Shown here piece by piece: positions 15,476-42,057 of a stretch of 64,000 bases of DNA. Origin of the DNA: Trichoplax adhaerens (taxonomy: Eukaryota > Animalia > Placozoa); contig NW_002060948.1 of NCBI RefSeq assembly GCF_000150275.1, forward strand, positions 1 to 64,000, in the 5' to 3' direction. The position numbers were made by a program, and so were the translations under genes. The notes below the pieces were generated by a model. That model made no database searches, was not told the DNA's origin, and was given only the letters and a program-made list of their open reading frames with translations. Each line of letters begins with the position of its first letter. Positions within the stretch are counted from its first letter, which is position 1.

Positions 15476-15530
15476 ATTTACAGAAGAGAATGGCAAGACG
15501 AGAATGAAGAAAGGATTTCTGTATTTGCTG

Positions 15531-16711
15531 CTGTACTGTACTGTACAGTCGCCAGTTCAGTGTACTGTACTGTAGGTTGTACAGTACAGACTGTACAGTA
15601 CAGTACAGGGATACAGTACTGTACAACTCCCTGGTCCAGTTCCAGTCTACTGTAGTACAGTACAGTACTGTATGGAAAAAGCGGCGCCGTTGTGCATTGC
15701 GTACTGTACACTGTACAGTACGCATGACCGTACAGTACTGAACATGGTTGTTACAGTACTGTAGACTGTACTGTACTGTACTGTAGTCAAGGAGCGACTC
15801 TTGTGTACTTTGTACTGTATCAAAAAAGCAGCGCATGACCCTACTGTACAGTGTACAGTACTGAACATGGCTGTTACAGTCAACTGTACAGTACAGTACA
15901 ATACTGTACTGTACAGTACCCCATGCACTATTCTGTGTACTGTACAGTGTACACTGTACTGTACTGTACAGTATGTACAGTACAGTACAGTACAGTAAGG
16001 CTTTGGAACTTTTCTTGTACTGTACTGTACAGTGTACAGTACTGTCCACTGTCTACAGTACATACTGTACAGTACAGTACTCGATGCACTATTCTGTGTA
16101 AAGTACTGTACAGTACAGTACTACAGTATATTGTACTGTACTGTGTGTGCTGATTCATCGGATTGGAAAAGGATCATACAGTACAGTACTATACTGTACA
16201 TTACTGTACAGTACTGTACTGTACTGTACTGAATGAGCCACTTTCTACAGTAGACCCAGTACAGTACTTTGTACTGTGCAAAACTCAGTCTGACCCAGTG
16301 CACGTGTGGTACTGTACTGTACTGTACAGTACAGTATGTGGAGATCGCTGCACTCTGCTTATCAATTAATTCATCAATTAATTAATTAATTAATTAATTA
16401 ATTATACAGTACAGTACTGTATTAATGAGTAATGAGATCGAAAAAAAGCCTTCTCTCTCTAGTACTGTACTCGATCTTCATCATAAAAGCGAGTCATTTT
16501 CTTCTCTTTATTTGCAATCCCCTTGACAGTACTGTACAGTACTGTATACAGTATCATGAAACTTTTTCTTTTTATTTTTACCCACTGTGTACAGTACAGT
16601 ACTGTAGACGTGTACACTGTACAGTACAGTACAGTACAGCGTACAGAGTCAACAGAGAGTGGTACTGTACTGTACTGTAGAGGCGAGACGGTATACAGTA
16701 CCACGTACTGT
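15531..16711. repeat. Palindromic CAGTA/TACTG pentamer array (about 1.2 kb) between divergent ACBD3 and DUF445-like genes
   Basis: Runs of CAGTA and its reverse complement TACTG alternate, giving many TACTGTACAGTA and ACAGTACTGT palindromes. Contains larger internal duplications and an (ATTA)n tract at about 16364-16403. Confidence 0.93.
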
Positions 16712-16876
16712 AGGTCGTGAGAGTAGAAACAGGCGTTCAGTCGTAGGTCGAATGGCTCTTTCTTCTCCAATAACATGTAGCTGGAAACCATTGGAGAGAG
16801 AGAGGACGATCGAGTCGATGCGTAGTAAAAATCCAGTAAAAGTATCATATTCTTTTATTATTATAGCATTAGCTTG

Positions 16877-18350
16877 ATGATGAAGATGGAAAATACCAGC
16901 AATGAAGTATCAGCCGATGATCAATCTTCTCTTCAAATCAAGATCGGAAACCGTTGGACGCGAATCATTAATAAAAGCAGCGTCAGTTTAGCACTCAGTG
17001 CTGTTATTGGTGGTATTGGTGTTGTCATTCTTGTGGCCAGTCAACAAGACAAAACTGCCCTTGCTGTCAGCCATTTTTTCTTATCTTGTGGTATTTTTGC
17101 CTTTGCTGGCGGATTCACCAATTGGTTGGCAATATTCATGCTCTTTAACAAAATACCATGGATATACGGAAGCGGGTAAGCACAGTAGACTATAGAGTAC
17201 GGTACTGTATGGAGACTTTGGGTACTGATGCAGATCCTTCTGCAACCTTGATCGATACAGTAGTAGACAGCAGTAATTCAATATACAATTATCCAGAAAA
17301 ATGGAGTTATAGTCCTGTAGAATCCAAAGTCGTAAAGCGTGATGCAGTTCAGTGCAATAGACTTCGCGTTCTACTGTACTTTCTTCCTACTTTTTACATT
17401 TTATACCATCATACTGCTACTGTGCTACATCCATTCTCTCCACAGTACATACTACACTCTACTGTATGAACTAGGCTCCATACACCAAATTCGATCAAAC
17501 TAAATCAATCACTTTGAGGAATAACATTATCGTAGTTTATGCAATGATGAAGAGCAAGCATGATGCACTAGAACACCAACTGATTCGTTTCGGTGTAATT
17601 ATCCTTTGATTTTAGAGTTATTCCTAAAAAGTACGTTGAAATTAGGATGACTGTCAAAGATGTCATTCTCAAAACTTTCTTTGAGGAAAGATTCGTGTCG
17701 CAGTACTTGTTGGATAAAGTCAATACTTTGCAAGATAATTTGGCCATGAAGGAGAAGATGAAGACTTTTCTCAACTCTAGTCAAGTCGATGAAATAATTC
17801 AAGAAAAACTAGAGGTCATGAAAACAGGTCAACCTTTAGGACAATCACTAACAAATATGGGATTTGATATCAAATCTTTGCAACCCCTGGTGAAGCCTTT
17901 TATAATTGGATTTGGCGAAGATCTAATAGACCATTTGAAACACAGTTTTTCTCAATCATGGAATGTAAGTTATGACGTTAAAGTTTGACAATCTGAATAT
18001 TGTAATTGTACTCGACTTATTCACTTGATTTATTTGTCTTACATGTTCTGCACGATGTTGCATGAACCACTTCATTATTCTGTACACAGGATACACTTGC
18101 TAACTTCAATAATAAGATTACTTCTCTTTATCTTATTATATCTTAGGTGAATAAACTACAGTCTATTTTTCGGTCTGAGATTGATAACTATTTGGATATC
18201 AGGTCAAAACAGTTAACTGCTGAAATCGTGACAAAGATATTGAAAGATGTCATTCATCAACACTTAGGATGGATCGTCGTTTGGGGATGCGCATTTGGAG
18301 GAATTTTTGGTGTCTTTTTTCAGGCAGTCGGCTTAGGACCTTTATATTAA
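16877..18350 (+). CDS. DUF445/UPF0754-like membrane protein, 3 exons
   Basis: Exons 16877-17175, 17616-17964, 18147-18350 splice in frame. N-terminal hydrophobic GIFAFAGGFTNWLAIFMLFNKIPWIYGSGVIP and C-terminal IHQHLGWIVVWGCAFGGIFG resemble the two conserved ends of DUF445 proteins. Confidence 0.8.
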
Positions 18351-20039
18351 TTGATTGATTGGGTCATGTTCAATTAATTTACATTATTTGTAGTATATCC
18401 TGAACAAGAAATGGACATTGCACGCAATAGTGCTACTGATCAGTACGTTTGTATACGGGTATTTTCAATTGAATTGGGATACGGCATGATGTGTGTGTTA
18501 AAGGATAACTTCTTTTATGGACAGTCCAATCAAGTATCTAGTGGTACAATATTATGTATATTGTAAGCACCTTACTAATTGATCAAATTGCCTTGATTGA
18601 TAAAGTAGATTGCGCAGAATGATCTTACTGTAAATAAATAAATAATAATATATGTACCACTGTATTAAGTTGTGTTGTATATTTTTGGAGAACATGGATT
18701 ACATGATGAAAATTGCATGTAGTGTATTTTAATATCTCTATATTTCAATTTTGTGATTGTACTAGATTGTACGCGTATAATATCATGGTCTATTGAAAAG
18801 TTTATAGTCATCACTGTTTATAACCTAGCGCCGTTGAGGTCGTGAAAGCCCAGAGAATTGTTGGCTCACGACTTTCCCAGTGTTGTCATGGACAGTTTCT
18901 AGAAATGCAAAAGATCCTTACATCGTGATAAAGTACGAAACGCCTACAGTACTGTAAAAATCAAGTGAGATATTGATGTTAAGTAACCGATAGTACGGTG
19001 TTGATGAAAAAGAATATAAACGAAAGCTTAAAATAGCGGTATATTGAATTTTTAATTATTGGCATATCGTTCATTGTTCAACATTCCAACGAATTAATAA
19101 ATTATTTATCTTACATCAACAATTGTTATCATTCAGTAGCATTATGGATTTTCAGCTTTGTTTGACGACAATTTTAAGTTGCTTGCCATTGGGGAATACT
19201 TCACTGAGAACTATTGATGTAGTTAAGCAGTGTAAGAAATTGGCAACAGCATGGATTATGAAGTGCACTCAAATGGAATCGTCACGGTTGTAATGTAGTA
19301 AAGTGCTGTGTATGTAGGTAGATTGAATTAATACAACTATCCCTACTTGTACTCCCATGGTGAGGCTTTGTAAGCCATCCTCTTTCATTGCTGGACGTGT
19401 ATGTTGTAGCGGTATACTTTATATGGAGCGATGCTGAATCAGATGCAATTAATAAAGCCAAATTGAAGTCTAGAACTGCCTTACTGTACAAATACAATTT
19501 GTGCTGGAAAAGTATGACAAACAGAACATTATGGATGCTGCTATTACTATGCCATACTCTGTACTTTATAAATATGTTGTACTGGTGGAAGTATTTCGTA
19601 TGAGTAGAGGCAGGCCTGTTTTCCATATCATTTTGGAACAACTACGACACCAAATACTAGTGCATAATGAACCAGTGAAGGATTACTGGACGATCACGCG
19701 TGGACTTACTGGACTCAGTATGGACAGTTCTACTATCGTCAAACTCGATCACAGCTTTAAAAATAGTCAATATCTGTAATCCTTTGCTTTTAACTATCGC
19801 CATTTTTGTCCTCTATGGGATGAATGATCAGTTGATCACCTTTGTAACATCCTACTGTAGCTCGCTACACCTTGTTTCAAGTACGCTACATCTCAGAGTA
19901 CAGAGAATTTTTTTCAAAGAAATGCTTTTCCTTGTAATAAAAGATACTCAGTGTGGATATTTTCAGTCTATCTACACGAAAAAATAAGTCCTTGAATCGT
20001 TTTCAAACAATTTCATGGACGGCATGACTGCCATTTCTT

Positions 20040-20340
20040 AGCCGACATGGCGGATCGTGTATACAGTATGTTATATATATAAGATATAAGATATACAGTA
20101 TATTGCACGCGACGTTCGTGTCGGTTGTGATCGCAGTGTTGTCATCCATTCCGTTAGATGACATTGCGCTTGCGTTGAAGTAAGAGGCGGAGCCTCAGGC
20201 CTTGTCAACCAATGACATCCACGGACGTTGAACAGGCTTTTTTTTTTCTTCTGGTACTGCGTCAACTGCTGCAAGTGAAGTGGAGGACGCTGACTTGTCC
20301 TCCTTGTTCATAATAAGTTAGTTGAAGTGAGAGGGGGGTT
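20040..20340 (+). promoter_or_regulatory. GC-enriched putative ARID4 promoter with YY1-like (ACATGGCGG, about 20045-20053) and CCAAT (about 20209) motifs
   Basis: Locally raised GC/CpG 300-600 bp upstream of the ARID4 ATG, motif matches by eye, TACAGTA motifs nearby. Confidence 0.4.
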
Positions 20341-20632
20341 GAAGTCTGACTTGACTGACATTCAAAAGGATGATTATATTGTTTCTGAGTCAGTGTACTA
20401 AATATACAATATACTAAAAGACTTGCAGTGAATCAAGTGGAAAAAACTATTCGAAGGAAAACTTGATTGCTTGGCGTGCGCTGGATGTTTTGTGGAAGAT
20501 AGTTGGAGGAAATTGATTGCTGGACCTTAATTTTGACGCGTTATCCAAAGGTGGGGGTAAAAGGCGAGCGATTGAAAGGAATATCGTAAAGATCGAGTTG
20601 CAGTAGTACAAACAGGAACGAAACAGTCAGCA

Positions 20633-23600
20633 ATGGTAAGACTTGAAAATGTGTCTCTCAATGGATAGGCTCACATAATCATGGATGTTTGTGTGTCATT
20701 TCTTCCATTCATGGTATATCATGGATGTCATGGCTAGAGCATTTGTCGATACAGTAGAGTCTTGAACTTGAGTTATTTTTTACTCCTGATTGCAAATGTT
20801 GATTTTAGTCAAAGAAAAATAACTTAGTAGTTCAATTTGAAGTACTGTAGAGTTTTGTTGTAATGAGAGGAGGAGGAGAAATTTTTGACAGAGATTTTTT
20901 TACAGGGGGGGGGGAGACGCTGTTGGCTGCCTTCTGATGCAAAGTAGCCTTGCAGTAGTGATTGTTAAGAACGTAAAATGGAGCATAGATCAACAATATT
21001 ATTATCATGTTACACTACTACTACAGTCTATCTCCATCGTTATAAAGTCTACTAGATGAAAATAACTGGTCTTGATAGATCGTCCAGTTGTACATTTCAT
21101 ATGTCCATATCGTCATTCCAAGCTTACTGTACAGGTTACATTCACAATGGGATTTTTCTACATGGATCAAAGCCAATCAGATCATTCATTGATCCTTCTC
21201 GCTATGGGCTAGCCATACACTCTACTACTGTATTCTACAGTCGATCTGCTTGGAAGATAATATTACATCAACGGCATTTCTCACCAACGTATGGACTAGT
21301 TTCACTCGTTCAATCAATTTTTGAAAAGGGTGGCTGCTGATTTGACCATTATGGATAACTCGATTGAACAATTGAAACTCTAAATGGTGTTATTAAATGC
21401 TGCATCAATGACTTTGGAAAACCGCTAGTTGTACGCATTCAATATTTTTTTTTTCCTTGATCGATTTCACTTATCATTTTATACACGATACATTACTTCA
21501 AATATTACCTCTCTGTAATCCACTTGTTTCCATCTTCTATGTCACTGCCATAAATAACCCACCAAGTTTAAACTAAATTAATTCTTTTCAATTCTAGACT
21601 TCAGAGGAGCCTGCATACTTGAATATTGGTACTGATGTTAGTGCTAAATATCGTGGTGCTTTCTGCGAAGCTAAAATTACCGACGTAAGAAAAATGGTTC
21701 GATGTAAGGTAAATTTTCCAACGAATCAACATCGTTTACAATATAGCAATATTGAATTTTAAATGATTTTATCCTTTCATTTATTTATTATATGCTATTA
21801 GTGCTAATCTACAGCGTAAACTTAAGTTGCCTTTTTATTACAAGACTGTATGTTTTTTTAGATTAAATTAAATTGGAAATGACTGAAATCGTATTTTTAT
21901 GTTGTTTAGGTTAACATCGGAAGAAATACTAACCCTGTTACAGTACTAGACGACTGTATTGTCCGTGGCGAGTTGAAGGTATTCCTAATTCAAAACTTGT
22001 TTGAACTACTTCTCTGTAATGTCAACCTCGATTGTAGTAGTCCATGATGATTAGAGTTAGCATCCATGACGAAACTATTGTAGATTTCGAACTCTTGCCT
22101 TTATCTACGCGTATAAAATTGACACCGTTTTGATGGCTTCAACATTCTACTGTAATTTAAGGGCATCTTATCAAGCTTGCTCATTGAAACTGATGAGCCA
22201 TGTCTATGGTACAAATGAGCTTATAGGCTTTATCTATTATATTTTTTTGACCATCAATATGCTTATTATATGACTACCAAATAGCAAAATAAAATCATTG
22301 CTAGTACCTAGAAATAATCAGTTCTATAAAATACCGCGGAGTTGTTGTGATATTGGAAAGTATATATCAATTCTTACAAATTTCAATTATTGTTCCTTTT
22401 AGGTTGGCAGCGAAATTGTTCTTCAAATGCCGGATGATACTCTCGCTAGTGGTAGTATCGCTAAGCTTACCGATGCTAGCACATATACAGTTGGTAAGTT
22501 AATGTTTTTCTTGTCATTACACGATATAACTTAGCAATGTTACGTTTCAAGAAAATTTTCTATTTAAACTTTCTCCTCCCCTCGGATAAAAATATGTTTC
22601 TCTCTACCCTGATCCATCATCAACATATTTCATGACAATTAAGTTATTCCAAACACTAAGTAAATGCAAGCTTTGTGCTATCATGTCATCAAATAGATAT
22701 ACGGTGGAATAAATAAAGAATGCTATATTATATGTCATTAACATGAAGTTGCTGAACTTAACTTCAAGTGTTTCCATTCATTTCAAGTAATGTTTATTCA
22801 TCACTTAGCATGCTATAGAACCGTACTCTACTATATTTGGTTAACTCGTTACAGTTTACAAATGCGCAGTACAACCACAACGTAGTCATAATAAATCACA
22901 CTGATATAGATACCATTAGAGATTGTACGATTAAAGTGTAATAAACTTATATATTGCGCCTTGAATTAGTTTTCGATGATGGTGATCAGAGATCCTTAAA
23001 GCGCACCGCACTTTGCTTAAAGGGCCAGAGACACTTCAATGAAAGCGAGGTTAGTACTTATTATTTAGATACAGTAGTCTACTTTAAGAGTTGCTTGATA
23101 TCTTAAAAGAGTAGACGCGTTCCGTTACTTCAATCATGGACTACCTGATGTATCTATATCTAGTAGTCCATGCTTCAATCAATAGGTCTAATGGTTGGGA
23201 TAAATACCGCATGTGGTTGTGCAATGTATAATATTGTACTCTACGCATATTTGTACATGTATAATATCTTAGTCACGTTGTTTGTTGGTCTGACTCGATT
23301 TTTGTACTTAACTATAAATATACTTATTTATAGACACTGGATCATTTACCTCTGACAAATCCGGAAAATTTTGGCAATCCAGTAGTAGCGGTAAGATTAC
23401 TCCATTTTAATTCTGTAAGTTATAAAAAATATGTACAAGTTATCAATTAGCAAATAATTGTATAAATTAGGAGTCGAAGAAAGTTGCTAAGAAATCGCAG
23501 CGATCAAGGTAATAATAATAGAAATTTAAAAAATCAATTTATCATCACTTCATGAGACTAAATCTATTTTGCTTTAATGCACTACTACTGTATTACATGT

Positions 23601-26600
23601 AAGCCACGCTTATAACTGAAATGGTTGGTTTAAATACAGGAATGATGATACTGAATCAGAAAGTAGTGAAAGCAAGAAAATCGGAAGTAATGAGCGCGCT
23701 CGAATTGCGAAGGTAAAATTCATAAAAATCGTCGACGAATTACATGTTACTACGTAAATTCAAAGTAGGTTAATGAGAAATCATTCTTTAGTAATTGTGC
23801 TTCTACTAGTGACATAATATCAGATCAGTTGCTATGTTCTTCGATTAAGTATCTACAGCATTCGTTTACATCGCTGCTTTTTGGCTTAATTGCGCTAAGT
23901 AGAATTTCGAAAAAGAAGCTGTTGTTAATTTATACTTTGAGCTTAAATAATGTAAATAAATTATGTTGTAATGGTAGATTGTCATGGTCAAGCAGAATGA
24001 CAAAAAGAGAAGTTGCTTTCCAGGCTTGGTTCGTAAATTTTGCTGTTTATTGTAGGTGTTATGTTAGCACTTATTTTACTCTTTTCTATTACTAAAATTT
24101 ATTAGCTGCAAAGGGATTCTGATCTAAACGATGACGTGGAAAAATGTTCTATTAGATCTTTCAAAGATGGAAAGATGTACGTTATTTTTTAATATGTTGT
24201 ATAAATATAAGTAGCTTTACAAGTGTTATCGCCAGTGAAATTTAATCGATAATGAGCATGTTTATAAATAACAGAATTTCGGTAGCCAAGAAAGATTTGC
24301 AATCATTAGATTTAAATTATGAAGCCGCTATAAATCAACTAAAAAGTAACGGATCTGCTCATAAGCCAGGTATGTACTGTATTTGATTGAGGCATCATAA
24401 TATATTAGTTAGTGTCTACACTATGATAATATGTCCGCAAAGCGATAAATAAAGTTGTATTAATCTATTTTCTCCATTTTATATTAAAATAATTAAAGCA
24501 CTGGAAAAAGCGATTACGTATATAAATGATGGTGAACTACCTGAAGACTGGCAGGTATGGAAAGTGTTTAAGAAAATAGAGTTACTACTTTACTTTCTTC
24601 CAATGTAGCATCCCTATCGATATTCCTTAGTTACGTTTTTATTTTTCATTAGGTTACCAATAAAGATGGAGATGATGTTGTAATGGACGAAGAAGCTGAA
24701 GAATTTATGGGTCGATTATACAAATTTATGGAAGATAAAGGTTAGGTTAATCAATTCAGGATAAATTATCTGATTCAATGGACATATTTTCTAACCGTTA
24801 TTTTTTTCCGAATTTATTAGGTACACCAATTACTAAGGCACCGGTCTTAGGTTATCAAACCTTAAATCTGTACAAGCTATATAAATTAGTTCAGAAAATG
24901 GGAGGAATGGAAAGGGTATTTAGTATATGAACTTGAAGATTTGAAATGTTATAGGTGCTGTCGTTTATTCATGAAAGTATTACTATTTTTCAGGTTTCAC
25001 AACAAATGAAGTGGAGATCATTATATTCTCAACTTGGTATAGCAACCATGATTACCAGTGCATCTCACAATATCAAACTTGCATATCAGAAGTATGGAAT
25101 TTGCGTTAATTTTCAAAATTTTGTAATACGAAAATTAAAAGCAGAAAATACGTTTCTATAGATATCTTTATCCTTATGAGTGCTATGAATATGACAAAAC
25201 TGCCGATGATAAAAATTCCCATAATGAAGATAGTGCGGAGAGTGCTAAGAGCCAAGAAGTACCCACATCTTCTGGAGTAATGATTGAATAGTTTTTGTTA
25301 TTTACACACTTAGTAAATTATAGATATTGTTGGCGGATAATTTAGAATTCAATAACAATAATATTATTAATAATGCTTTGTAGACTCTTAGACGCGAACG
25401 GTACAGAAGACAGCGCAGACGGAAAGGTATTTTAATATACAGTACAATTATTGTATAGGTTGTCTCGTAAAAACCGTAATGATACTTTGTGGTTTCGTAT
25501 AGAAATCAGTGAAGGTGACGATAGCACTGATGATGGAGTTGCCTCTGGTTCCGATGTATACAAACCAAGTTAGTTGATATTACTAATATTTTTTTGCTAC
25601 ATTTGGCCTTGTCATACATTAGAAACTAACACTATCTTATTTATCTGCTAAACAGTAGAATACCCTGGGAAAGACGCTACGTAAGTATAATTACAGATCA
25701 TTAGTATATATTTTTAGCATTGCCAATTGTGATAAGAAGTTTTGTTTCTGAACTTCACTCTTAATCTTTAGGAATGATAATTCAGACACTTATTCTGTTG
25801 GATCATTTGTATTGGTAAAGTATGGCAGGGGTAAAAAAAATTGCCAGTATGAAGCCAAGGTTAGATCCACTTATTGTTACTTCATAAATTAATTCTTAGT
25901 TGTAGTAAAAATTTCTTTCCATCGACAGATTCTTGAATGGGATGACAGTGATGAAAGTGGTACCACATCATATTTCGTTCATTATTCAGGCTGGAATAGC
26001 CGGTAAGTTAATTTAATTAATACGCGGAGTTACTTTACTATGTAATATGAGAAATCTCTAAAATGATTTTGTACTCAACAGACACGATGAATGGATCAAA
26101 CCAGATAGAATTATTCAAAAAATGAATCCACAAGGACTTTCAAGAGGCAATAAGGTAAGATCTTGCAATGTTACTATATTCTATAGTACCGATTAGGTTG
26201 CATATACAGATTACATACATATATACATAAAATGCTTTCTATGAATTATAAATTACTTATAGAATCCAGCTAAATCAGTATCGCTTCCTGTTCGACAAAT
26301 GCCTTTAAGAGGCGGCAGTCAATTAACCACTAATCCTCGCCGAAATAGCAGAAATGGTAACCTTAAAACGGAGCGTACATCTCCATCTAACAATAGACAG
26401 CCATCAGGTAAACGGATTAATTGTGCATATATTCGGTCAAGTAGCCCTATATCATCTCTTGTTGTATTACCAATAGGGAGAAGAGGTAGAGCTAGCACAC
26501 GGAACAGTCCACACTACGATAGTGAGGTGGAATCAGGTAATCCAGAATTGAAATATAGTTTCTGTAACTGAAGTTATATGCTAAAATTGTGATTTACAAT

Positions 26601-27718
26601 TTTTATTTCGTGCACGCTAGCACCATCCGACAGCCCAACTTCACAGAATACTAATTCTCCTGCAGATGAAGAAGCATCACATCCTGACGAAAATACGAGT
26701 AGTATGGAAGTTGTTTCTTATCAAGACGATGAAATAAATACTGCTAGCAGTAATAACAGTCCTAAAGAGAAGGTTGAAGCTAATGTAGAAGAAGAATCTT
26801 CTGAAGAAAATAAGATGGAAGTGGAGAGTGAAGAAATAAAACAAGATATCCCCCCTAATGATGATGATGATGGCGAGCCAGCAGAGGAATCAAGCCACGA
26901 AGAAGCAGAACAAGTTGAAGTTAAAAAAGAACCTGAAGTCACAGAACAATCACCTGAAACATGTGTAACTACTCAGGTTGATCAGAAAATCGAAGATAGT
27001 GCTTCTCCGGAAGAAAATCCCACGATTGAAGATAAGCCTACTACTGAAGAAAAGAAGGAAGAAAGTGAAGAAAGTAAAACATCAAACGATGATGCTAATA
27101 TCGATGAGAATTCTGATCCTGTAGAGCTAATTTTACCTCGTAAAAGAGGAAATAGGAGAAATGGCAATGCCAGGAAAAGATGTCGAAGTGATTCAACATC
27201 AGTATCGTCAAATGATCAAAGTAGCAAGTCTAATAATGATAGTAGTGCTAAGACTTCGACATCCTCTTCAACTGTTAGTGATGATAATGCAGAAAATGAT
27301 CTCGCAGGCATTTTAAATGGTATGTTATGAGCGTATTTTATGAAAGAGTTGGATATAGCGTTGTTAAGAGTTTTGTGTACATAATCTCCTAGATCTGGTA
27401 GTGTTAGGCGACTTACCTATCCGGAAAAGAATAGAAACTCTGCAAGTCAAACTAAATGAAATAAGACGTTTGTATAACAGTCGACGAGCGGAAGTAATGT
27501 CAATTGATAGGAAATTAAAGAAATATAGGAAAAAAGCGAAAGAGAAAGGTAACATTGTTACTATAATTTATGTAGACATTCGTAAAACTAATGCATATAC
27601 ATAAGTGGCTTGGTACTAATGTATACCAATTTGTGTCATTAACTGTTTTGCTTTCAATTTCATTTTAGCCCATAGCAATGGTGAATCGGTTGAGATTGTC
27701 GTTTCAGCGGAAGCTTAG
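20633..27718 (+). CDS. ARID4: AT-rich interactive domain protein 4 (RBBP1/ARID4A/B orthologue; Tudor-PWWP-ARID-chromobarrel)
   Basis: ATG|gtaag at 20633 then 21598 [27 protein letters not shown]; [44 protein letters not shown]; [40 protein letters not shown]...LAYQKYLYPYE; chromobarrel [22 protein letters not shown]; C-terminal coiled coil; TAG at 27716-27718. Confidence 0.96.
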
Positions 27719-28087
27719 CTGTCTTTTCAATGTACAGTACATTATCTTCGTTTTTCGATTACATTTACTAGCATAATAGATTTTAGTCTAGGATTGATGT
27801 CAGTCATGCTTTAGATCAAGATTGTAGAAAATATTGCAAGGGCTAATTGTTTTAAGTACATGATCGACATTTTTCGTAAAAGTAATAAATTATTCTTTTA
27901 CATGAACTTTGTAATCACCAGTCCTGAACCACGTTATTGTACTATGACTTTTACTCGGGAATAAAGTATAATAATCTCAATGACATGTAAATTTGTTGAT
28001 TCTTTCTATAAAAATTTTGTCAATTTCAATTCCGAGGTCAACAATAGGAAGTAAAAGTGTACAGATGATAGCAATCGAGTAAAATCG

Positions 28088-30997
28088 TCAGTTTTTATTA
28101 TGGACAGATTGTAATCTAGTTTTTTTAGGTTTTACATTTCTTTTAATATCCTGCTTTTGCTTTTTAAGATTTTTTCTTTTTTCTTTCCGTTTAATTCTCA
28201 ATTTTGCTGCTTGCTGGGCGTGCTTTTTACTGCTCGACTCTCCAGAGAATTTAAAAGGACCCTGTGTTTTCTTCTAAATCGAATATATAAATGATATTTA
28301 GACTTTACTTTGGTAATTGGAATCCTTAGTGCAGTACAGATATTTATGATTTTAACCTTTGATGTAGGCTGTTTTGATGATCGAAATACACGAAGGTTAT
28401 TGGTTTTATTAAAGGCCGAACCATGTAACTTTAAGGCCATGATTAAACTTTCGTTAGACTGTAAATAATAAATGTTGGGTAAGTGAACATCTGCGGTAGG
28501 AACTAAGCAAAGGGATTAACAATGATGCACATCTGTAATAGTGCGATGTCAATTTAACATGCCTTAAAGGTAACAAACCCAAAACCTTTACCCATGCCAG
28601 TTTTAGGATCTCTAATAATACGAATGGTTTCGACTTCACCACATGAATGGAAATGATCACGAAGTGATTCATCTTGGACATCTTAACGTTTAAAAATGGT
28701 AGAGATTATCTGTTACATACGATACCCTTCGCATATAATAACGGTATAAACTACAAGATTAACAATACATGAAATGGTTATTTTACCCAAAGGCAAGTTG
28801 CCGACGAATATCGACCTTTTATGGTCATGCTGAAAGTAACGTACAGTAAAATAAATAAATGCTGCATTATGTAAAGATATCGCAAAGGCGTTCAGTATTC
28901 TGAAGCACACAAGATATTTCATTGTTGACATACCTTCTTTGAATTTGAGGCTACATCAACTCTGATATGACGATTTAAAAGCTCTATGCCATTGCTGCAG
29001 TACATACATTATACAATATTAGGATTCTACCCTTATGAGAAGGATCTGCTGATAATCATGTGGTTATAATAGTAGTTACTAGCCTTTCCATTGCACTTTG
29101 AGCAACTTCCTTGGTTTCAAAAACAATGTATGCATTCATTGACTGACCCTGGCTGTGAAATTTTTTCCTGCCATGAATTTTAATTGGAAGAACATGAGCA
29201 GATTAATCGATAACTTAAGCAATGATATTGCATAGACACTTACTACGGTATTCAATAATGTGTCTAGTAATGGATTCATATGATATATAACATTAAGAAA
29301 TTACCGTATAGTTGTAAGTAAAATAACATGGCGTATCTAAACTTAAAACTGCATAGATAAGAGCATTAAATGTGAACTCACTTGATAAATGCTGTCTTTT
29401 TCGACATATTTGATTCAGCAACAGGCTAAATAAGAGCCAAATGTTAACCTTTTCGAAGTTACTGATTATAAGAGAATTATAATTCCTTGATAGGCATTAA
29501 GCTTACTATTGATCTAAATCTTATAGATTCGATATTGCCATATCTGGAAAATAGCTTTTTCACGTCCTAATTAGTTTATGAGGTTATTTAAAAAAAATCG
29601 TCATATTAAAGAGAGTCCAAAATATTAGAGACGATCTGTAGATTGGTACTCTATATAAAAGTAGTAATCAAGAATATTGGCCTTGTCACAAAGGCCGTAA
29701 CCAGCAAACGCCCATGTTACCTTAGATTTGCAATGCAATGGCAAATTTCCAACGAATATAGTTCGGTCATTTCTTTCATCACTAGGTAATACCGTAGTTA
29801 TACATAGGATATTCTATTCAGTGACTAGAATATCAAGTCTTGCATTATAGACGTATCGTTCACTTTACCTATCTGAAGGGGTTTTAGTAACGTTCTGTTG
29901 CTTTTCTGCTTGTTGATTTGCATCCTTACTAACATGTTCTTTATTCTTTGCAGCTGCAAAATCGTCACTTACTGTTAGTAAAATAACTTTTGGCTAATTT
30001 AAGTTAACAGCAAGGAGCTATATAGAGTAATATGATGATAACATGTCGTGCAACTAGGTCAAAAAGATGAATTTTTGATTATACTCTGATTCTATCTAAC
30101 TCGATCATAATAAAATTTCAAGTGATAACATACTGCATACAGTAGCGCACAGAATGATTAAATTATGATTGGAATTGCATGTACTGATAAGAAATAGCTT
30201 AAGAGTCTCCCTTTAATAATTGGTGTTAGTAATTCGTATCTACCATTACTCCGTTTTCCCTTGTTAGTTTACTCCTCAAGAAAATAAATCAAATAACATG
30301 CATGCTAAGGTTTAATAGAAAATGACCTTTGAGCTGCTTTGCGTGCATCTGATCATACTTCGATGTTGGAGGATCCAAAAATTCTACTGTAACTTTCTTA
30401 GATTTGTTGCTATCGTCGAATAACTTTGCGAGTGAGGTGCGTTTTGCTTTTGCTTTTTTCTTGTTATTTTGGGGAAAGACTGCATCGCAGATTGAGCCAA
30501 TCCGGTAATCATAATTATTTATTGAGAAATATTCAGGTAATACATCCTATAATTGTCATCATTATGAATGGTTATAGTTGGATAGTTAGATCAATGCTAT
30601 CTTATTCTTTGCAAATACAGTGTATTTGCAAATAATAATATACCTATAATATATTGCAAAAATTAATACGATTATACGAATCGAGCTTGATGAGTGGATT
30701 GGCAGTACTACACTGAACCAGTTCATTAATTTAGTCAGTAGACGAAATTTGATCAGGATGCATATGAATTATTCCATAGTATACTCAAATTTTCTGTTAC
30801 TTTGGTTATGCATTATGCAATATTATCATCAGGCAACTGTAGATTGCTACATCCAGGGTACTACCGTAATCTAGGCGTAATATTTCTGCTTATGATTACT
30901 AGCTGGATGTAACACAACGAGGATAGAGCGGATCAAAATGTATCACTTGGATATTCATATGGCTTACCTTTTTCGATTTCGATGATGTGCTAGCCAT
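28088..30997 (-). CDS. RBM34: RNA-binding protein 34 (Nop12-like, two RRMs, basic tail)
   Basis: Start [10 protein letters not shown]|gtaagc at 30997 (inferred); RRM1 [10 protein letters not shown]...[14 protein letters not shown]...SMNAYIVF...NRHIRVDVA; RRM2 [13 protein letters not shown]...[27 protein letters not shown]; Lys-rich tail ending TGA 28090-28088. Confidence 0.9.
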
Positions 30998-31544
30998 CTT
31001 GTTTTTATTGGCCTAATTCTACGGTATAACGAGATTGGATTGGTTCTTATTTTACTTCTGATAATTAACATAGTAGCAATGCAACTTTGAAAGTGCTTGC
31101 GAAACATTCCCTATGACGCTCGTGTACTGTGGTACTGTATGAAACGAAATGCTTTTCAAGATTCATCGAAAGAATAAATGCAGCATACCTTTACAATTAG
31201 AAAGTCCAAGTATTCCTCCAGTAAGTCTTGGCTCTACGTAGTGAATTACTAAACAATGATGGATTTCTACTACAGAATTAAGCTGCAGAAATTGATGGAT
31301 TCAGAATGCAATCGCTCTTCTTCTTCAGCGAGTATCTGCTGTTCTGCGCACGCGTAATGGGCATCGGTACATCATGTCATACAGGTACTCATGTGTCTGC
31401 CAGGGGAATGCTAGGTTTGCAATTAGTTTGTTGAATACAGTATGTGTACTTTATATCTTTGTGACTGATGACTGGTACACGATACAGTCGTAAAGCGCTT
31501 AGGACCATGGGACTTTTGGAATACAGTAAGAAAAATTCTGACAC

Positions 31545-31652
31545 ATACTGTACTCGACACACTACAGTGTACAGTACGTCATAATACTCTACAGCATGTA
31601 CTGTATACTGTACTGTACGGTACCGTGTACAGTGTACAGTGTACAGTACAGT
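31545..31652. repeat. Short CAGTA/TACTG palindromic array between divergent RBM34 and the small + strand gene
   Basis: tactgtact, actacagtgtacagtac, tactgtatactgtactgtac, gtacagtgtacagtgtacagtacagta. Confidence 0.8.
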
Positions 31653-32246
31653 AACCTGAATGAATTCGGGTGGAGACGTCGAGTCCTCTTCGCGTTCAAC
31701 CTGGTTTAACCATTTGTACGGCAAAGAATTGAGCGATTGCCACTCGCGCTGCCCATAAACGTCCAAACTAGCAATCAAATCGTCCAATTCTTTCATTTAA
31801 TTCACCCCAATTTATTGTAGCTGTTTACCAAAAGAAGTCTAAAATGTCATCAAGTCTTTTACAACAGGTAATGACTGTAAATGAATCGTCATCAATGTAA
31901 TATAGGAGACAATACGATCAGTACAACATTGGGATTTTACTGTACATACATAGCAGTTTGAGTAGTAAACACTATCTCTGGTAAACTTTTGTTGAAATAT
32001 TCTCGATCGAAAGTAGCCCAACCACGATATACATGTTAACGCTGCCATTCGCTACTGTCATGTATGTAGTTTAAAAGTATAAGATTAAATGGACAACTTC
32101 AACTACTGTAATAGAATTGAGTAATAAGTGTAGTTCAAGTGCTATACATTGAATCGTTTCTCGAGTACACTAAGTGTCATTATTGCAGCGATTGATTGAT
32201 ACGACACCTATTTGAAAGTATATTGCTATTATAATTATTATTATAG

Positions 32247-33157
32247 TTAGCGCTATTGGCTTATATCAACGGTGATCCACGTGGAAAAGATCTTTATAAT
32301 GCTACTGTTGGTGTAAATTTAGCCATGAATTTACATCAAAAATTCAAATCGTCTACCAAAGGAGATGCATTAAGGGTAAGATTTTTCGTGTAATGTTTGC
32401 AGCATGACTTGATTACGCCAATAACACTTATTATTTTCCTTTTAAATCTTAAATCGCTCTAAGTAGAAATTTGCGTCGAAAAATCTGATAACCTTGTTAT
32501 TATATTGTACTTCTATGATGCAATTCTTAGTTTTTGATAGACTAAAGTCAACAGGTATAGCGAAAAATATCTCCGAAAGTAGTGTTTGTTGCCAACAAAA
32601 ATTTCAGTGGTTGAGATACTAATGTCAGCCGTACTGTACGCAGTCTAGTGCTGCAATCAGATGTATTGTACATATAGTATATAGGTACTGCATTCATAGA
32701 GCGATACAAATTCGAGTATACAGAAGTAAAGTATCATACAGTATTAACTGTGTTGCTTAGTGACTGCAGTTCTACTCTACACTCTCATTAAAATCTTCCA
32801 ATTTTTTCAACTTTCTCTACTTCTGTTATTCAAATACTGCACTCGTACTGTATATTCGGAAGTGACAATTACCAAGACTGTACGCATTAATACCTGAAAT
32901 CGATAGAAAAATTAGTTGCCAAATCATTATGCTAGATTAGTATTACTAATGACATTATTTCGGTAGTTGTATTGCAACTTTGCGATGGTTTAATGGATGC
33001 TCAATTGCTTATTTGTTTTACCGATTAACTTACTTAGGCGGTAGCAGTCAACGGTGTTACTGAATATATTAAACATCACCCTAACGCTAGCGAGGAACAG
33101 ATAGCCGCAGAAGTTGTACGTCAAATTTCGGAATTTGTCAAGGCGTATCGTTCATAA
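32247..33157 (+). CDS. Small (about 85-90 aa) uncharacterised helical protein; first exon/start uncertain (candidate ATGs near 32060-32090)
   Basis: Exon 32247(or 32251)-32375 LALLAYINGDPRGKDLYNATVGVNLAMNLHQKFKSSTKGDALR|gtaag splices in phase 0 to 33038-33157 AVAVNGVTEYIKHHPNASEEQIAAEVVRQISEFVKAYRS*. Not in the ORF track. Confidence 0.7.
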
Positions 33158-35555
33158 TTGTACATAGGTCAACAGCTTTCTTCGTATTTGGGATAGATTT
33201 CGATGTTCATTGTAACCGATGAAAACTAGAACTCAAACAATATTTAAAAAATATGAGTGTTCACTATAAAGTGCGCATATTTACACTACGCAACATCATT
33301 CTTAATACCGGTGCTGTGTAGATTAAATAGCCCTTACTGAAATCCTTCAGTAATCAAATTTAATATTATAACTTTACTGTACAGTTTCTCCTATTATTAT
33401 CTCTTAAATCGTAATAATCCTGGATATATAATCATTAGTTGCTGATATGCTCATATAAAGTCATATATAACTTAGGTAGATGTCACTATGTCACGTACTG
33501 TATTTGCAAGATCATCTTACTTGACAAATGCCTCTATCAAGATATGGTGATTCAGTTGATGAACAGAGATTTTAAATAGATTTACTATTAATAAAATTGA
33601 TGAAAGAATGCTATGGATCTAACATTAATTTTGGATTCAGATCAAACTTTTATGTTTATGACATAAAAACATGCACATTTTTTCATTGTATTGAAATACG
33701 TAGATTAATTTCATAGATGTAGGCTGATACAACACGAAGCTAGATATCTTCGTCTGTCAATTTACAGTTGCTAAATGTGATCTAAAGTTTGCAGCTAGCT
33801 AGTGCAGGTGCGCCACATTCGTAGCAGAGGGTAGATTAGGACAGAACCGTTGAGAGAGCGGAGTAGATCATTTTAATCAATATTCGCCCATAGATTTTAG
33901 ATTGTACTGAATCGAAGCTTTAAGAATTAATATGCAGATTTGTACAGTAATATAGTTAAATATCACTTGTATAAATTAAACTGTACGTAAGATTGTTATA
34001 TAAGCCTAAATTGTTAAAGAATTCTTGTTATATCCATTAATGGAACTTAGATATGGGATAAATTCTTGTCGTTAAATGCTTTTGCCAATGAGGTTTTTGC
34101 GATCTGAAATTCTTGCTCTTATAATGTGACTATCAGCTAAGATACATATACACGTATAGTACACCTAATCCTGGATAGAATTCACCTTTGTCTTATATCT
34201 CAATAACCAGGTGATTAAATAGAATTCTGAATATCACACTCTAAATTCACCTGTCTTATAGTTTATCAGCAGAGATGAAAGATCCTCTGTGCTATATAAT
34301 GTCCGTAGTTACTCTGGCAATTAACGCTATCGACTTAAGCATGATAAGTTTATACCATTTCCCGCCTTGCCCATTTATTCCATCTTGCCTGATTAATGCA
34401 GATTTTATTTTCTCAAACTACAACGTGAATTTAGAAAATTGAGTAGATCATAAGCTGTGATTTCACATAGTTTATTAATCACAATACTCGATTAATAGGT
34501 GGCAAGACGTTTTGAGATACTGAACGATGATATTGATATCGTAGACTGTATATAGCTTGAATCAATATGGCGTTTGAAGTATAGCATATAATACTGATCT
34601 ATAGTGATAGATGTACCTACAGGTCAATATTGATAAAATCATCTTATTTAATTGGGTTAGTTCAATTTAAGATATGAATGGAATCCTCTTTTTGTTATGA
34701 ATTTGGATTTGGATTTGCTTATTCAAATCAAAGTTGAAATCCGTAGGCATCACATCACAGCGATATCCAGAATGCAAGGTACCGGCTCTGAATAACAACT
34801 TGAAAGGCAGCTAAATTAAGTCTATCATCATGTTTGGATTATTTAACGCTAAATATTGTATACCACAAAATATTATCACTGTAAAGAGTATTTCCTTGAT
34901 TGTATCAGCGCCAAATAAATAGAAAAAAAAGTCAAAGTCCTATTCCAACTCCGAATACTGAGACGTCAATAACGATGAAAATAGATGAATTAATGTACTT
35001 CCTTCGGATACAGAGAAAGAAAATGTCTAACTGTCAAAGTACTTATTCAAACTATTGGCTACCATTCAATACTTTACGTAGTTTTTGGCTGGTAATTGCC
35101 GGCATGACTACGCACTACTGTCATTGAAATACCATATGGAAATGCTAATACAATACTTTTATCGTAATATAGCAAACATTATTAATAATTGTTATTATAG
35201 TATGTAGTGGATGCCGTCCTTATCTCTTTTTTAACGAAAGAGTATTTTTGGTTCTGATTGATTTTACCACAGCTAAAAGAGATGCTAAAAAAAATAATTC
35301 GGTACAAGAGAAATAAATTTTAACGTGGTCAATTTAGTATCAGCGTCCTAGGAGAATGATCACTTTTAAAACAGAGATGCTATTATCGTCTAGCTGCGAA
35401 TACTCTAATAGAATAGATAATCAATACTCATTATAATAATAATGATCGCTATATCCATATAAATGTGTCTAACATTTTAGTAAAATGCAGTCATAAGCAA
35501 TGAAATATTTGCTGTTCATTTTACATTTATTGTCTACTTTGGATGCCTTTCAAAA

Positions 35556-35563
35556 TGACGTCA
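35556..35563. promoter_or_regulatory. Perfect CRE palindrome TGACGTCA about 340 bp upstream of the LC3 ATG
   Basis: Exact 8-bp match; function not shown. Confidence 0.35.
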
Positions 35564-35896
35564 GAAAGGAAAAACACAGGTGGTGTTGCTATCGTCTTTT
35601 GATATTAGGGTAGAGCATGAGCATTGAAAAAATAAATACAAAATACTCTCGAACAATGAATTCACAAGCTTGGCCAGAGTCAATTCCTACGCGATTAGCG
35701 TAGACTTTCTTCCATAGTATCATCAAGTTACGTAGTAGCTTTGATGTAGTTACGTATGTATGTTGTTTCTATCAGTTACAATCAACTATTCGTTTAGAAC
35801 AACTAGTCGTAGTTTGCCTTGTTGTTGAGGCTAATATTAGCTTATTTTATAGTAGCTATTACAGTCGATAAAATCCATTTCTAAATTATCGTAAAA

Positions 35897-38257
<2,361 letters not shown>

Positions 38258-39915
38258 GTAAAAGTTATCCACTTGGCTCGTTTTTAATCCAATCACTTTG
38301 AATTCCCGAAGTAGCAGCAATTACTTAATATATAATACAATAATCTAGAACGAAACGTTTATTTTAATTTTCAATCGAATGGTTAATATTGTAAGAAGGA
38401 AATAATTCTATCCTATTTAATACTGTCGTATAGATTGAAAGCATGTAATTAACAACGCTCCACTCATCATAAGTGAAATATCGATTGATGATAGTGTTGA
38501 TTCTTACGCTAGATAATTAATCCGCTTTTTAGATAGCAATAATTGCCATTACATTACGCGTACGTATCGAAAATCAACAAATAGAAAGAGATGTACATTC
38601 ATAGCGATTATATTTTTGGGTTGTTCATTTGAAAGAATATCTTGTTGAATACTATTAAACATAAGATATGGTTGAATAAAGTAAGAAATCATCTTAATTA
38701 CAATTTAAGTATAATGCATTATAGATATTAATTTTTACCTCATTGATATTCCTATCTAAAATGCAAGACTTGTTATTGAATACAAATACTAGAAATTTCC
38801 TACATGCAGGTATCGATAATTTTTGTTTTATGGCCTATTCTCCCATTTTGTGCATATTAATGGTAACTATCGGAAAATTTTATTGTTAAAATTTATTAAA
38901 GTGTCTAATAGAAATACTCCTACAACATTAGTAGTTCTATTTTACTGTGAGATTCAGATAATATAAATGATTGAATGACGTACTTGTAGGCATACGGTAG
39001 GTATTAATGCATCTACAGACTACTAAAAATTCAATTTCTCTAACAAATGTTGGCTTCTTTTATACTTGAGAATCTTGTCATTGCTACTATGTAGTATTAT
39101 AATATACTGTAAGATTAAAGATGAATATTTGAGCTATTTTGTACCCGTAATTTTAAAATCGAACCGAACCGAAGCTTACCATAAGTTAGTCATAAAGCAA
39201 AATTGAGGCCAACTCATTGCAGATATTTTATAATACACTTTCACAATAATAATCGATTGTTCAATATAGTTAGCATCATTTATTTGATGATAAAAAATTG
39301 GCACTATTTATGGATGAATTAAAGTGCTTAGTGTATACTGATGATAACAATATATCTTCAAAAAGGCATATACATTATGTAATGTAGGTCAAAATATCGC
39401 ATAAATCTTTCTTGAAATCAGCAACTGCGGATGTTATTGAGATCTTCACTTACAATATCACTTCTTATTCATCTCATCACTATGTTTCTACCTTTACAAA
39501 ATCTAAAAAGAGGTGATGGCTGATCTGTAAACATGAACTGTCGAATACCGCAGTATCCCTAAGCTATCTCCCAAGACAGTAGTCTCTATCGTTAACATTT
39601 CATCCAATATCCTAGTTTGTTAATGTCATAAAGTGGTAATACTGCAATCAATTCTAGTAAAATCAGTAGGTTAGCTTTATTATATAGCATTACCAAAGCA
39701 TTATAAATTCTTTTATTGATTTATATTACAAGTTCAACATTAAGAAAATTAACACAGCTAAGTTTTGGGTCAATCATTCAAAGCTGTACAAATCAGTAGA
39801 ACAGTAACATTTGCTACGTTTATAATATGCGTATAGCAATCACTGCCAAAATAGTAATACAGCAGAGTAATTATGATAGTAATATTAATTTATGGAAACG
39901 TCTTAGCATTTATGG

Positions 39916-40442
39916 TTATTTCTGTGAGGCTATAGACTCAGTCACTTGCTGTTGATGCTCCTGAAATCGAAGCATAATCCGTTGTGTCATTTTTAAATAC
40001 TTCTCCGTACAGTTTAAAGCACAGCCGATCTATTGAGCAAGTAGATGAATGATATTAAAAGTTAGTTGCAAACGCACATTATGATAGTCCGATATAGTAC
40101 TATAGAATAGAACCAATGTCTATCTTTGCCTATCTAGTGTGATAGATATTTTACCTCCAAACTTGAAATCTTTCGACTACTAAAGTCGTGTACACAATCA
40201 CTAAAACATGATTCGGATAATTTATTGTATGAAGCTAGAAAGTCGCGGAACTTCAATGTCGAAAAAATAGATTTCAGTTAGTAATAATTAGACCAGAATG
40301 TTGTTCTAAATGAATAATTTATGTCAGAGCTTGGTTGGCACTTTCTGTAGAAATACCTTCAATATGCATACACAGTACTGTACTTGTTAACGATATTTAG
40401 ACCTACCTGTCTCATATTTACGTCGTCTTGGCCGGCATTCAT
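39916..40442 (-). CDS. TIMM9: Mitochondrial import inner membrane translocase subunit Tim9 (81 aa)
   Basis: Exons 40442-40407, 40250-40155, 40029-39916: MNAGQDDVNMRQ-FRDFLASYNKLSESCFSDCVHDFSSRKISSLE-IGCALNCTEKYLKMTQRIMLRFQEHQQQVTESIASQK*; twin CX3C motif. Not in the ORF track. Confidence 0.96.
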
Positions 40443-41461
40443 GTTTGCAATATCCTAATTCCTTTGATCAGTGATAGTGAAATAAAAATAAATTTTATTA
40501 CGAAACGTATATACCTAAACGATCAAGCCATTTTAAACTAGCGGTCTTCTTCTTGCACCTATTGTCAATGAGCTTGTCTAAGTCAATTAAGGCACTACAG
40601 AGATTACAGAGATGGTACAGTATAATACTGGAAAATGATCATAGTGTACTAAATCCTAAAGGATACTGAGGTGATTGGACATTGAATGATGTCCATCCAG
40701 GTTTATCATTGGCAATTGCATGCTTCAATTATACACAGGTATACAGTATTATACAGTAGGAGGTGATCATAAACACCTGACGATCGTTGCCAGTACTTGC
40801 AACAGAATAATCAGGCTCGGGGATTTACGAACGATGATCATTTCAATGGACATACGGATAGTACTCTAGCGTGGTGTAAGCCCAACGAAAGCATATCTTT
40901 GCATGTTTGCAATGGCACAAGATTGTAACCTGGATTGAAGCCAGTAGAATACACAGATCAGATCAGATCCGAATAAAGAACGGTACTACAGCACTGTAGT
41001 AGGCTGCAATAGGCATCCTACGACATTGGTACAGTATGTTCTTTTTACTGTTGATAATTGTAAAAGAAGAGATAGTAAGATCATTTTAATGAGCACGAAT
41101 GCGCTGCTGAGCACGTCGGTCAATCTTGGGAGTAATGGTTGGCGTTCAATCTTTGCAGTGTGCTTGGCAAACCGCTTTCGCCTTTGGCAACGATTACATC
41201 CACGTCAAGTTGCACTTCAGGAGCGGTCAATGGCAATATAATGACTTACCTCAAATATCCTATAACTGGTTAATATGGGTACAGCAAAATGGCTAAAATT
41301 GTCTACCAAAATTTCTTGTAAGTGATGAGATGAATATCGTAAGGTGTTGTTGTACTTGTATGATTGACTGGCGTGTCGACAGCGTGTATGCACTGCGCAG
41401 ATCATAGCGGAATACTCTACTGTACGGTATTACCATGATGTCGCACACAAAGGTTTTACAA

Positions 41462-41858
41462 TGTACAGTACCATAGTGTACAGTGTACAGTACATACATT
41501 ACATTACAGTACTGTACAGTACAGTACTGTACACCGTAATAGTGTACTGTACACTGTACACTGTACACATGACCGACTACCGAGCACAGTATACAGTACA
41601 GTACAGTACAGTATCAGTGAACGGAACGGAAAGAGAGTCGAGCCATCTACAGTACTGTACTGTACAGTGTACAGTACACTGAGTACAGTACAGTACAGTA
41701 CATAGTACTGTATATCACACAGTACTGTACTGTACTGTACGTACAGTGTACAGTACACATGACCGGCTACCGAGCACTGTACAGTACATACTGTACAGTA
41801 ACATCATACTGTACAGTACAGTGTACAGTGTACTGTACTGTACTGTACTGTAACTGTA
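41462..41858. repeat. Palindromic CAGTA/TACTG pentamer array (about 0.4 kb) between divergent TIMM9 and TALPID3
   Basis: Same unit as 15531-16711, with two embedded copies of cacatgaccg(a/g)ctaccgagcac at about 41566 and 41756. Confidence 0.92.
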
Positions 41859-42057
41859 ATACGATCAGTGCAAAGCGTTCGTGTGGAACGGTTACATCTT
41901 CAATCCATTCGCGCGTCTAAAGGCCCATTTAAAAAAAAATATTATTCATATAAAGTTGATAATTGACCAAGACTCAAGGATCAAGATGCTGGCGAAACAT
42001 TCAAAGTGATTCATGTCTTCATTGTACAATATCTTAAGCTAACTCACTTTAATAATA

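Follow-up and report, generated by a model that had tools for sequence, protein, structure and literature searches.

Contig C1409 of Trichoplax adhaerens, a placozoan, contains three dense arrays of the pentamer CAGTA and its complement TACTG within its first 64 kb (the stretch of DNA analyzed here, called the window below), and each of them is flanked by two genes that point away from each other. This arrangement raises the question of what the arrays are, and whether they belong to divergent gene pairs as such or to promoters in general. The original prediction took them for a new, lineage-specific promoter element that marks every head-to-head gene pair. We found that the arrays are promoter-associated (ACAGT)n repeat islands of T. 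adhaerens; the repeat was described in 2010 (PMC2871265) and is therefore already known, not a new candidate element. On balance, the islands probably serve as an orientation-independent cis-element, a multi-copy platform for a putative palindrome-binding factor. Of the housekeeping promoter mark originally proposed, one part stands, since the arrays are promoter-proximal, indifferent to orientation and located at broadly used genes, but the mark is neither new nor specific to divergent pairs.

Identity and anatomy of the repeat islands

Dense CAGTA/TACTG arrays had been noted at 15531-16711, 31545-31652 and 41462-41858 (arrays 1, 2 and 3, none with an assigned strand), and our counts place them exactly there. 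In bins of 500 bp, the heptamers TACAGTA and TACTGTA number 83 across 15501-17000, 9 in 31501-32000 and 31 in 41501-42000, compared to 0-4 elsewhere. The window holds 197 matches to TACWGTA (W being A or T), where dinucleotide-preserving shuffles give 14.5 ± 4.0, and the density of GTAC reaches 91 per kb inside the arrays versus 3.7 outside, with 2.9 expected outside from composition. Array 1 is a 1.18-kb patchwork of (GTACW)n runs with 98 GTAC and internal duplicated blocks of 123-160 bp, and array 3, with a length of 397 bp, contains 44 GTAC and a 184-bp higher-order duplication (41461-41600 versus 41645-41781). The three-unit word GTACWGTACWGTAC has 35 matches in the window against 0.00 expected, all within these two arrays; perfect ACAGT/ACTGT repeats longer than 12 bp thus exist in the window, as is also seen from period-5 arrays called by Tandem Repeats Finder (TRF). 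Array 2 is short and degenerate, with 11 GTAC, no perfect run of three units and a 7-bp variant, (GTACAGT)4, at 31620-31647. Genome-wide (105,631,681 bases in 1414 contigs), the five-GTAC word (GTACW)4GTAC has 2688 matches versus 0 for a reversed control, and many unplaced contigs of ~1 kb are made up largely of this word.

The repeat is the one reported by Wang (2010, Biol Direct 5:18, PMC2871265), where pentanucleotides were the commonest Trichoplax microsatellites and 78% of them were ACAGT. In that study the ACAGT repeats lay upstream of genes (54% within 1 kb and 85% within 5 kb), the associated genes were enriched for translation and protein modification, and a transcription-factor site was proposed for the repeat. 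Organism, unit, position upstream of genes and housekeeping bias are all alike, and the ACAGT coordinates given for scaffold_1 were reproduced base for base in contig C1414. Together with a protein from farther along C1409 that has 100% identity to a Trichoplax sp. H2 entry, this match identifies the genome as T. adhaerens. What was described there is a directional, perfect microsatellite; the mixed GTAC+W patchwork, the 7-bp variant, the enrichment of lone heptamers and the sharing of an array between two genes are unreported in that work. The same motif has also been tied to insulation at gene starts: according to the Chimaera model (NAR 2026, PMC12817080), the 'repeating motifs ACGG and ACAGT' determine insulation in T. 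adhaerens Micro-C data, an attribution made in silico, with no factor or experiment. The tie of the repeat to gene 5' ends seen here agrees with the earlier of these two studies.

We found that the unit is better written as GTAC+W, or as overlapping palindromic heptamers TAC-W-GTA. Inside the arrays, GTAC recurs most often every 5 bp and next most often every 7 bp, and the strand symmetry that had been claimed is borne out by 79 GTACA versus 59 GTACT. Within 264 kb of Trichoplax sequence, spacers with A are roughly as frequent as spacers with T, and the spacer W switches between neighboring in-phase units in 25 of 74 cases (34%). An A/T change at the spacer flips the apparent orientation of the unit, and therefore no inversions are needed to explain the mixture. 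By comparison, the (ACAGT)n arrays of metagenomes, found with seven or more units each in at least 120 contigs, switch at 64 of 2264 spacers (2.8%). These contigs, from the Joint Genome Institute (JGI) and other sources, carry seven or more in-phase GTACW units that are almost all pure and of a single orientation; a few are mixed (L035, L071, L094 and L118). The metagenome arrays are ordinary directional microsatellites, which the Trichoplax patchwork is not. The term 'lineage-specific' can accordingly be kept for the mixed-orientation patchwork only, pure (ACAGT)n being common in metagenome contigs.

The heptamer is also found on its own. Where the nearest array is 300 bp or more away, TACAGTA and TACTGTA stand alone 116 and 115 times versus 27 expected, a 4.2-fold enrichment that makes them the top two of the 64 TA-NNN-TA words, and their flanks favor A at -1 and T at +1 over G or C. 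Lone GTAC away from arrays is not enriched, being no commoner than CATG or GATC, and therefore the heptamer, not GTAC, is the dispersed unit. The isolated motifs that had been noticed near 5' ends are real, as shores of the arrays: of 74 isolated heptamers, 28 are no more than 1.5 kb away from an array, which corresponds to 3.1 per kb near arrays versus 0.87 per kb farther off (binomial p = 7e-7). Between two plus-strand gene regions, six TACWGTA heptamers are thinly spread over 1.2 kb (20062-21232, no strand assigned), possibly a weak array at a tandem promoter. Outside arrays, in the window and the scaffold_1 sample described below, the TA-NNN-TA words that follow in the ranking are TACCGTA and TACGGTA (~2-fold enriched), and these variants are present inside arrays too (GTACCGTAC and GTACGGTAC).

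The arrays contain duplicated blocks of 123-184 bp and 32 cases of a 7-bp variant, TA-CAGTG-TA. Their longest perfect palindromes measure 18-22 bp, and the best inverted pair with a short spacer has 24-nt arms that are 83% complementary. Folded as a single strand, array 3 reaches -117 kcal/mol, compared to -75 ± 4 kcal/mol for shuffles (z = -10.1); this value reflects self-complementarity only, and the fold is more likely to promote slippage than cruciforms. A perfect (AATT)10 tract, palindromic over 28 bp, is embedded in array 1 at 16364-16404.

The arrays break short-read assemblies. In the DNA-like run, contigs come to an end on either side of array 2 (at 31548 and 31651), and the bin depth at 31461-31657 is 10,068 versus ~100 elsewhere, since array contigs from all over the genome accumulate in this bin. 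Contigs of the RNA runs that come from other loci have array-like ends, and therefore some arrays are transcribed.

Gene starts and gene orientation at the islands

All three arrays lie between the 5' ends of divergent genes, as originally proposed and as supported by open frames, RNA contigs and a gene model. The distance from the array to the ATG or first exon is 55-220 bp for five of the six flanking genes (139, 166, ~220, ~55 and 200 bp), and the flanking genes of the window arrays have the repeat ~1 kb or less upstream of their 5' end. Arrays are present at broadly used genes and absent from the homeobox (homeodomain) gene and its vicinity and from a 401-amino-acid (aa) open reading frame (ORF) taken as the SYT gene of the original prediction. 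There is also no dense array near the telomere or in the 3' third (last 20 kb) of the window.

That the arrays mark divergent pairs as such was not supported. We assumed that divergent, tandem and convergent regions occur in the ratio 1:2:1 and that a divergent region has two chances to carry an island and a tandem region has one; about half of the island-bearing regions should therefore be divergent, and therefore three out of three has a chance probability of ~0.125. In addition, we looked at the context of seven arrays in 200 kb of scaffold_1, a sample in which the shares of divergent and tandem cases are anecdotal and in which one array is tandem. Gene strands in this sample were assigned with a codon-score exon predictor, Pfam and the distances of Wang. 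The predictor is crude and gave the right strand for every window gene checked; AT and GC skew, in contrast, was of no use here for telling on which strand a gene lies. Array H (scaffold_1 1164126-1164536) lies 2 kb past the stop codon of a single-exon, plus-strand Vangl/Strabismus gene (Pfam Strabismus, 2e-73) and 150 bp before the next plus-strand ATG, with no minus-strand ORF between that stop and that ATG, and is a plain one-way (tandem) promoter. On the far side of arrays F and G, the predictor placed no minus-strand exon for 9-13 kb. Two predicted divergent junctions, at ~1032.6-1035.2 kb and 1097.7-1103.4 kb, showed no dense array and only single 9-mers, subject to the crudeness of the predictor. 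The RPS25 array was left out of the tandem count, one of its adjoining exon calls being doubtful, and the supplementary table of Wang lists the nearest downstream gene only, so that intergenic orientation is not derivable from it. These observations indicate that what the islands mark is promoters, and that genes lying head to head simply share one island.

Two further features of the scaffold_1 sample were noticed. Five short GTACWGTACWGTAC words are spaced 130-370 bp apart at 1122933-1124066, in a 13-kb stretch without a predicted exon, and represent a different, dispersed layout, possibly a longer tandem repeat containing GTACWGTACWGTAC. At 1047220-1069770, a plus-strand open frame of ~17.7 kb precedes two others with lengths of 0.7 and 4.1 kb; this is a giant gene almost without introns, and it dominated the training of the codon table.

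The genes beside the window arrays were characterized by protein searches exon by exon. Pfam searches of the single exons adjoining the arrays gave nothing usable, and the gene names rest on other exons and on the gene model P0001. To the left of array 1, the probable first coding exon of a minus-strand gene (14922-15392; open frame and codon score) has its first Met at 15392, 139 bp from the array. This gene is ACBD3-like because its downstream exons bear ACBP and GOLD_2 domains (13318-13539 and 11711-11962; Pfam). To the right, a membrane-protein gene on the plus strand has its probable first coding exon at 16877-17176 (open frame and codon score), with a Met at 16877, 166 bp from the array; the gene had been noted as 'DUF445-like', and this exon gave no Pfam match above the cut-off.

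Array 2 lies inside a ~380-bp gap between two divergent first exons, as delimited by RNA contigs, the ends of which are not exact transcription starts. The gene on its left, noted as RBM34, has its first exon at 31189-31326 on the minus strand (spliced contigs in three RNA-like runs, CT..AC joints, contig ends at 31274-31326) and downstream exons at 30967-31018, 30327-30545 and 29869-29953; its name is unconfirmed, the RRM-like exon having given no Pfam match. The small plus-strand gene on the right starts ~55 bp from the array with a first exon at ~31708-31865 (GT..AG joints, three RNA-like runs) and continues with exons at 32245-32374 and 33037 to ~33997. A minus-strand ORF at 31392-31796 was rejected as the small gene, since a protein homology search with it gave no hit and the RNA contigs put the gene on the plus strand.

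Array 3 is followed on its right by TALPID3, whose first coding exon (42058-42252, plus strand) is given by gene model P0001 (1359 aa, 100% identical, mapping to 42058-50398), with the ATG at 42058, 200 bp from the array. On its left lies a Tim10/DDP (TIMM9-like) gene on the minus strand (39919-40454), with exons at 39919-40029 and 40137-40277 and an inferred first exon; the probable ATG exon, at ~40407-40442, ends in a GTAGGT donor.

As for the remainder of the window, the telomere consists of 10.5 copies of CCCTAA at positions 1-63 and is followed by 15 kb without a GTAC array. The 401-aa ORF (55314-56516) gave no Pfam match, which leaves the name SYT unconfirmed, and tandem repeats with a period of 105-112 bp (2.5 copies, ~75% identity) at 54833-55361 enter the start of this frame. 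Rfam and bacterial promoter scans of the window gave nothing relevant.

Probable function and possible origin of the islands

From the position of the islands and the published insulation model, we infer that they have a function in promoters, which could work as follows. An island is a patchwork of overlapping TAC-W-GTA heptamers, equivalent to GTAC units in steps of 5 bp whose spacer may be A or T, and it takes up a large part of the untranscribed space before the 5' ends of broadly expressed genes; head-to-head genes of this kind share one island. A putative factor, probably dimeric, would recognize the palindrome and thereby use the island as a promoter or boundary element. Its binding would keep the promoter region open, presumably by nucleosome exclusion, and would give the local insulation of the Micro-C models, in which the island may have a causal role. 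Replication slippage, exchanges of A and T in the spacer and the duplication of blocks of 120-190 bp would make the islands grow and change, in line with the higher-order duplications inside the arrays and the heptamer shores around them. Several points weigh against this proposal. Sites repeated every 5 bp overlap on opposite faces of the helix and therefore could not all be occupied at once. The arrays differ tenfold in size (from 108 to 1181 bp) in a way that shows no evident connection with the genes, and array 3 is ~1,020 bp away from the probable ATG of the TIMM9-like gene. Moreover, the association with promoters could be an effect of open chromatin, not its cause.

One alternative, unlikely in our view, is that the arrays are neutral microsatellites, formed by a slippage-prone pentanucleotide that persists in nucleosome-free promoter DNA and has neither a function nor a link to transposons. 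The unit is competent for slippage elsewhere, given that (ACAGT)n of seven or more units occurs in at least 120 unrelated metagenome contigs; the strong single-strand fold of array 3 favors slippage, and the arrays vary in size and break assemblies. However, a single motif makes up 78% of the pentanucleotide repeats and is concentrated upstream of genes (PMC2871265), and GTAC is kept while the spacer is scrambled, although neutral decay should strike all five positions alike. The arrays found elsewhere are pure (2.8% switches), and the 4.2-fold enrichment of lone heptamers far from arrays is a poor fit to a neutral microsatellite. The energy of the array 3 fold has also been considered together with the many imperfect inverted repeats in the arrays, the pyrimidine-purine steps every 2-3 bp that can be read off the sequence and the position of array 2 between divergent starts, all of which would suit a structural element. 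Such an element would act without a specific reader, either through cruciforms or hairpins that absorb negative supercoiling between divergent polymerases or as a flexible tract that disfavors positioned nucleosomes. We regard this explanation as very unlikely: most inverted repeats are only 72-90% complementary and have long spacers, which together with the limit of 18-22 bp for perfect palindromes makes them poor substrates for extrusion from the duplex, and an array is also present at a one-way promoter (array H). A 5-bp period, in addition, has no net rotational preference for or against nucleosomes. Cruciform extrusion, which had been put forward for the arrays, is therefore doubtful, as there is no long, near-perfect palindrome with a short spacer among them and the longest perfect one has 22 bp.

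A further possibility concerns the origin of the repeat and comes from the word itself. The canonical excision footprints of Sleeping Beauty are TACAGTA and TACTGTA, which consist of the TA target, three terminal bases and TA; the 3' overhangs pair with an A:A mismatch, and mismatch repair makes the fourth base ambiguous (PMC6943129; bioRxiv 10.1101/659086). The arrays might be excision scars of Tc1/mariner-type elements with CAG termini, either accumulated or seeded by footprints and then extended by slippage, with regulation being secondary, although we consider this quite unlikely. Each cycle of insertion and excision at a TA in open promoter chromatin would add C(A/T)GTA, and repair of the A:A mismatch would make the choice of A or T random. 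The array word is identical to the canonical Tc1/Sleeping Beauty footprint, including the central A/T ambiguity, and the arrays can be read as (TACWG)n TA, with CTG (131) and CAG (115) among 608 inter-TA strings. The near-unordered spacer (34% switches versus 2.8% in ordinary (ACAGT)n arrays) would be expected from such a process, and the enriched lone heptamers, with A at -1 and T at +1, have the AT-rich context of a TA target, while lone GTAC is not enriched. Placozoan housekeeping promoters are documented landing sites of DNA transposons (Mutator; PMC12221973), and remnants with Tc1-like helix-turn-helix (HTH) and DDE_3 domains are present in the genome. With a footprint origin, a single step would account for the unit of 5 bp, for the scrambling of A and T in the spacer and for the location at promoters.

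Against this origin, transposable elements in Trichoplax amount to 0.13%, none of them active, and include only 11 Mariner/Tc1 fragments (PMC2871265), whereas thousands of arrays with tens of units each would demand enormous past transposition. The non-canonical footprints TACATA, TATGTA, TACTA and TAGTA are found at 0.8-1.1-fold outside arrays and do not exceed their background shares inside them. The five Tc1-like loci examined (3-kb loci with no terminal inverted repeats (TIRs) detected) contained no element with TA-CAGT termini. The switch rate of 34% is lower than the 50% expected for independent events, the 32 cases of TA-CAGTG-TA require an extra assumption, and the same word is expected of a palindromic factor site whose central base is free. 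Furthermore, Tc1 footprints are single scars at former insertion sites, and arrays of tens of units are undescribed as footprints; in the literature searched, we found no paper proposing footprint-derived microsatellites or the heptamer in Trichoplax.

One Tc1-like gene may nevertheless bear on how the arrays are read. An intact 358-aa ORF with HTH_28/HTH_32 and DDE_3 domains is located on the window's own contig (C1409:3537595-3538671, or L141:895-1971). No TIRs were detected around it, and it is 100% identical to an entry of Trichoplax sp. H2 (TrispH2_008830). The first catalytic D is replaced in this protein and in two relatives of the same length (53-54% identical); distant relatives keep DE. 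By these sequence features it looks like a domesticated Tc1/IS630-like transposase that is conserved among placozoans, and as a speculation we name it as a candidate reader of the transposon-end-like arrays. The combined proposal, that the arrays are transposon scars turned promoter DNA and that a domesticated-type transposase might read them, seems to us distinctly unlikely.

The islands among marked promoters

The reading that we favor, of the islands as an orientation-independent promoter element, places them beside another set of marked promoters in placozoans. Kim et al. (2025, Nature, PMC12221973) showed that housekeeping promoters of these animals form hubs and that a Mutator-TIR motif marks them, and the likeness lies in a class of housekeeping promoters that is marked by a repeat- or transposon-derived sequence. 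The Mutator-TIR motif differs in its word, given as 'ACGG' repeats in PMC12817080 (the motif logo was not compared), and is not carried by the arrays: ACGGACGG does not occur in the window, and GAACGGAACGG occurs once, at 41621, and is not enriched genome-wide (37 versus 43 for the control). We dropped the 'ACGG' loop-anchor motif from consideration, since neither GAACGGAACGG nor TACGGACGGACT is enriched genome-wide (7 versus 9 for the control in the case of the TACGGACGGACT 12-mer). A further word, ACGGACGGAC, is found beside or inside two GTAC arrays (scaffold_1 1115879 and 1164229) and may be the 'ACGG' loop-anchor/Mutator motif of the literature.

Outside the placozoans, the arrays can be compared with two better-known kinds of promoter DNA. 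The (GA)n/GAGA-factor promoters of Drosophila and the CpG-island promoters of vertebrates are low-complexity, orientation-free tracts in open chromatin at broadly expressed or bidirectional genes. The analogy to the arrays is functional only; the sequences differ, and we claim no membership in either class.

Placozoans are among the simplest animals, and what is at issue here is how promoters are marked in a compact genome. The repeat accounts for the majority of pentanucleotide microsatellites, is located at thousands of gene starts and is probably a main part of housekeeping-promoter marking. Our analysis sharpens the target in three respects. The word to be recognized would be TACWGTA, a palindromic heptamer, or GTAC repeated every 5 bp, and not the directional ACAGT. 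The link to head-to-head genes would follow from two promoters sharing one island. Finally, the word is that of a canonical Tc1-type excision footprint, which provides a testable hypothesis for the origin of the islands and a candidate protein.

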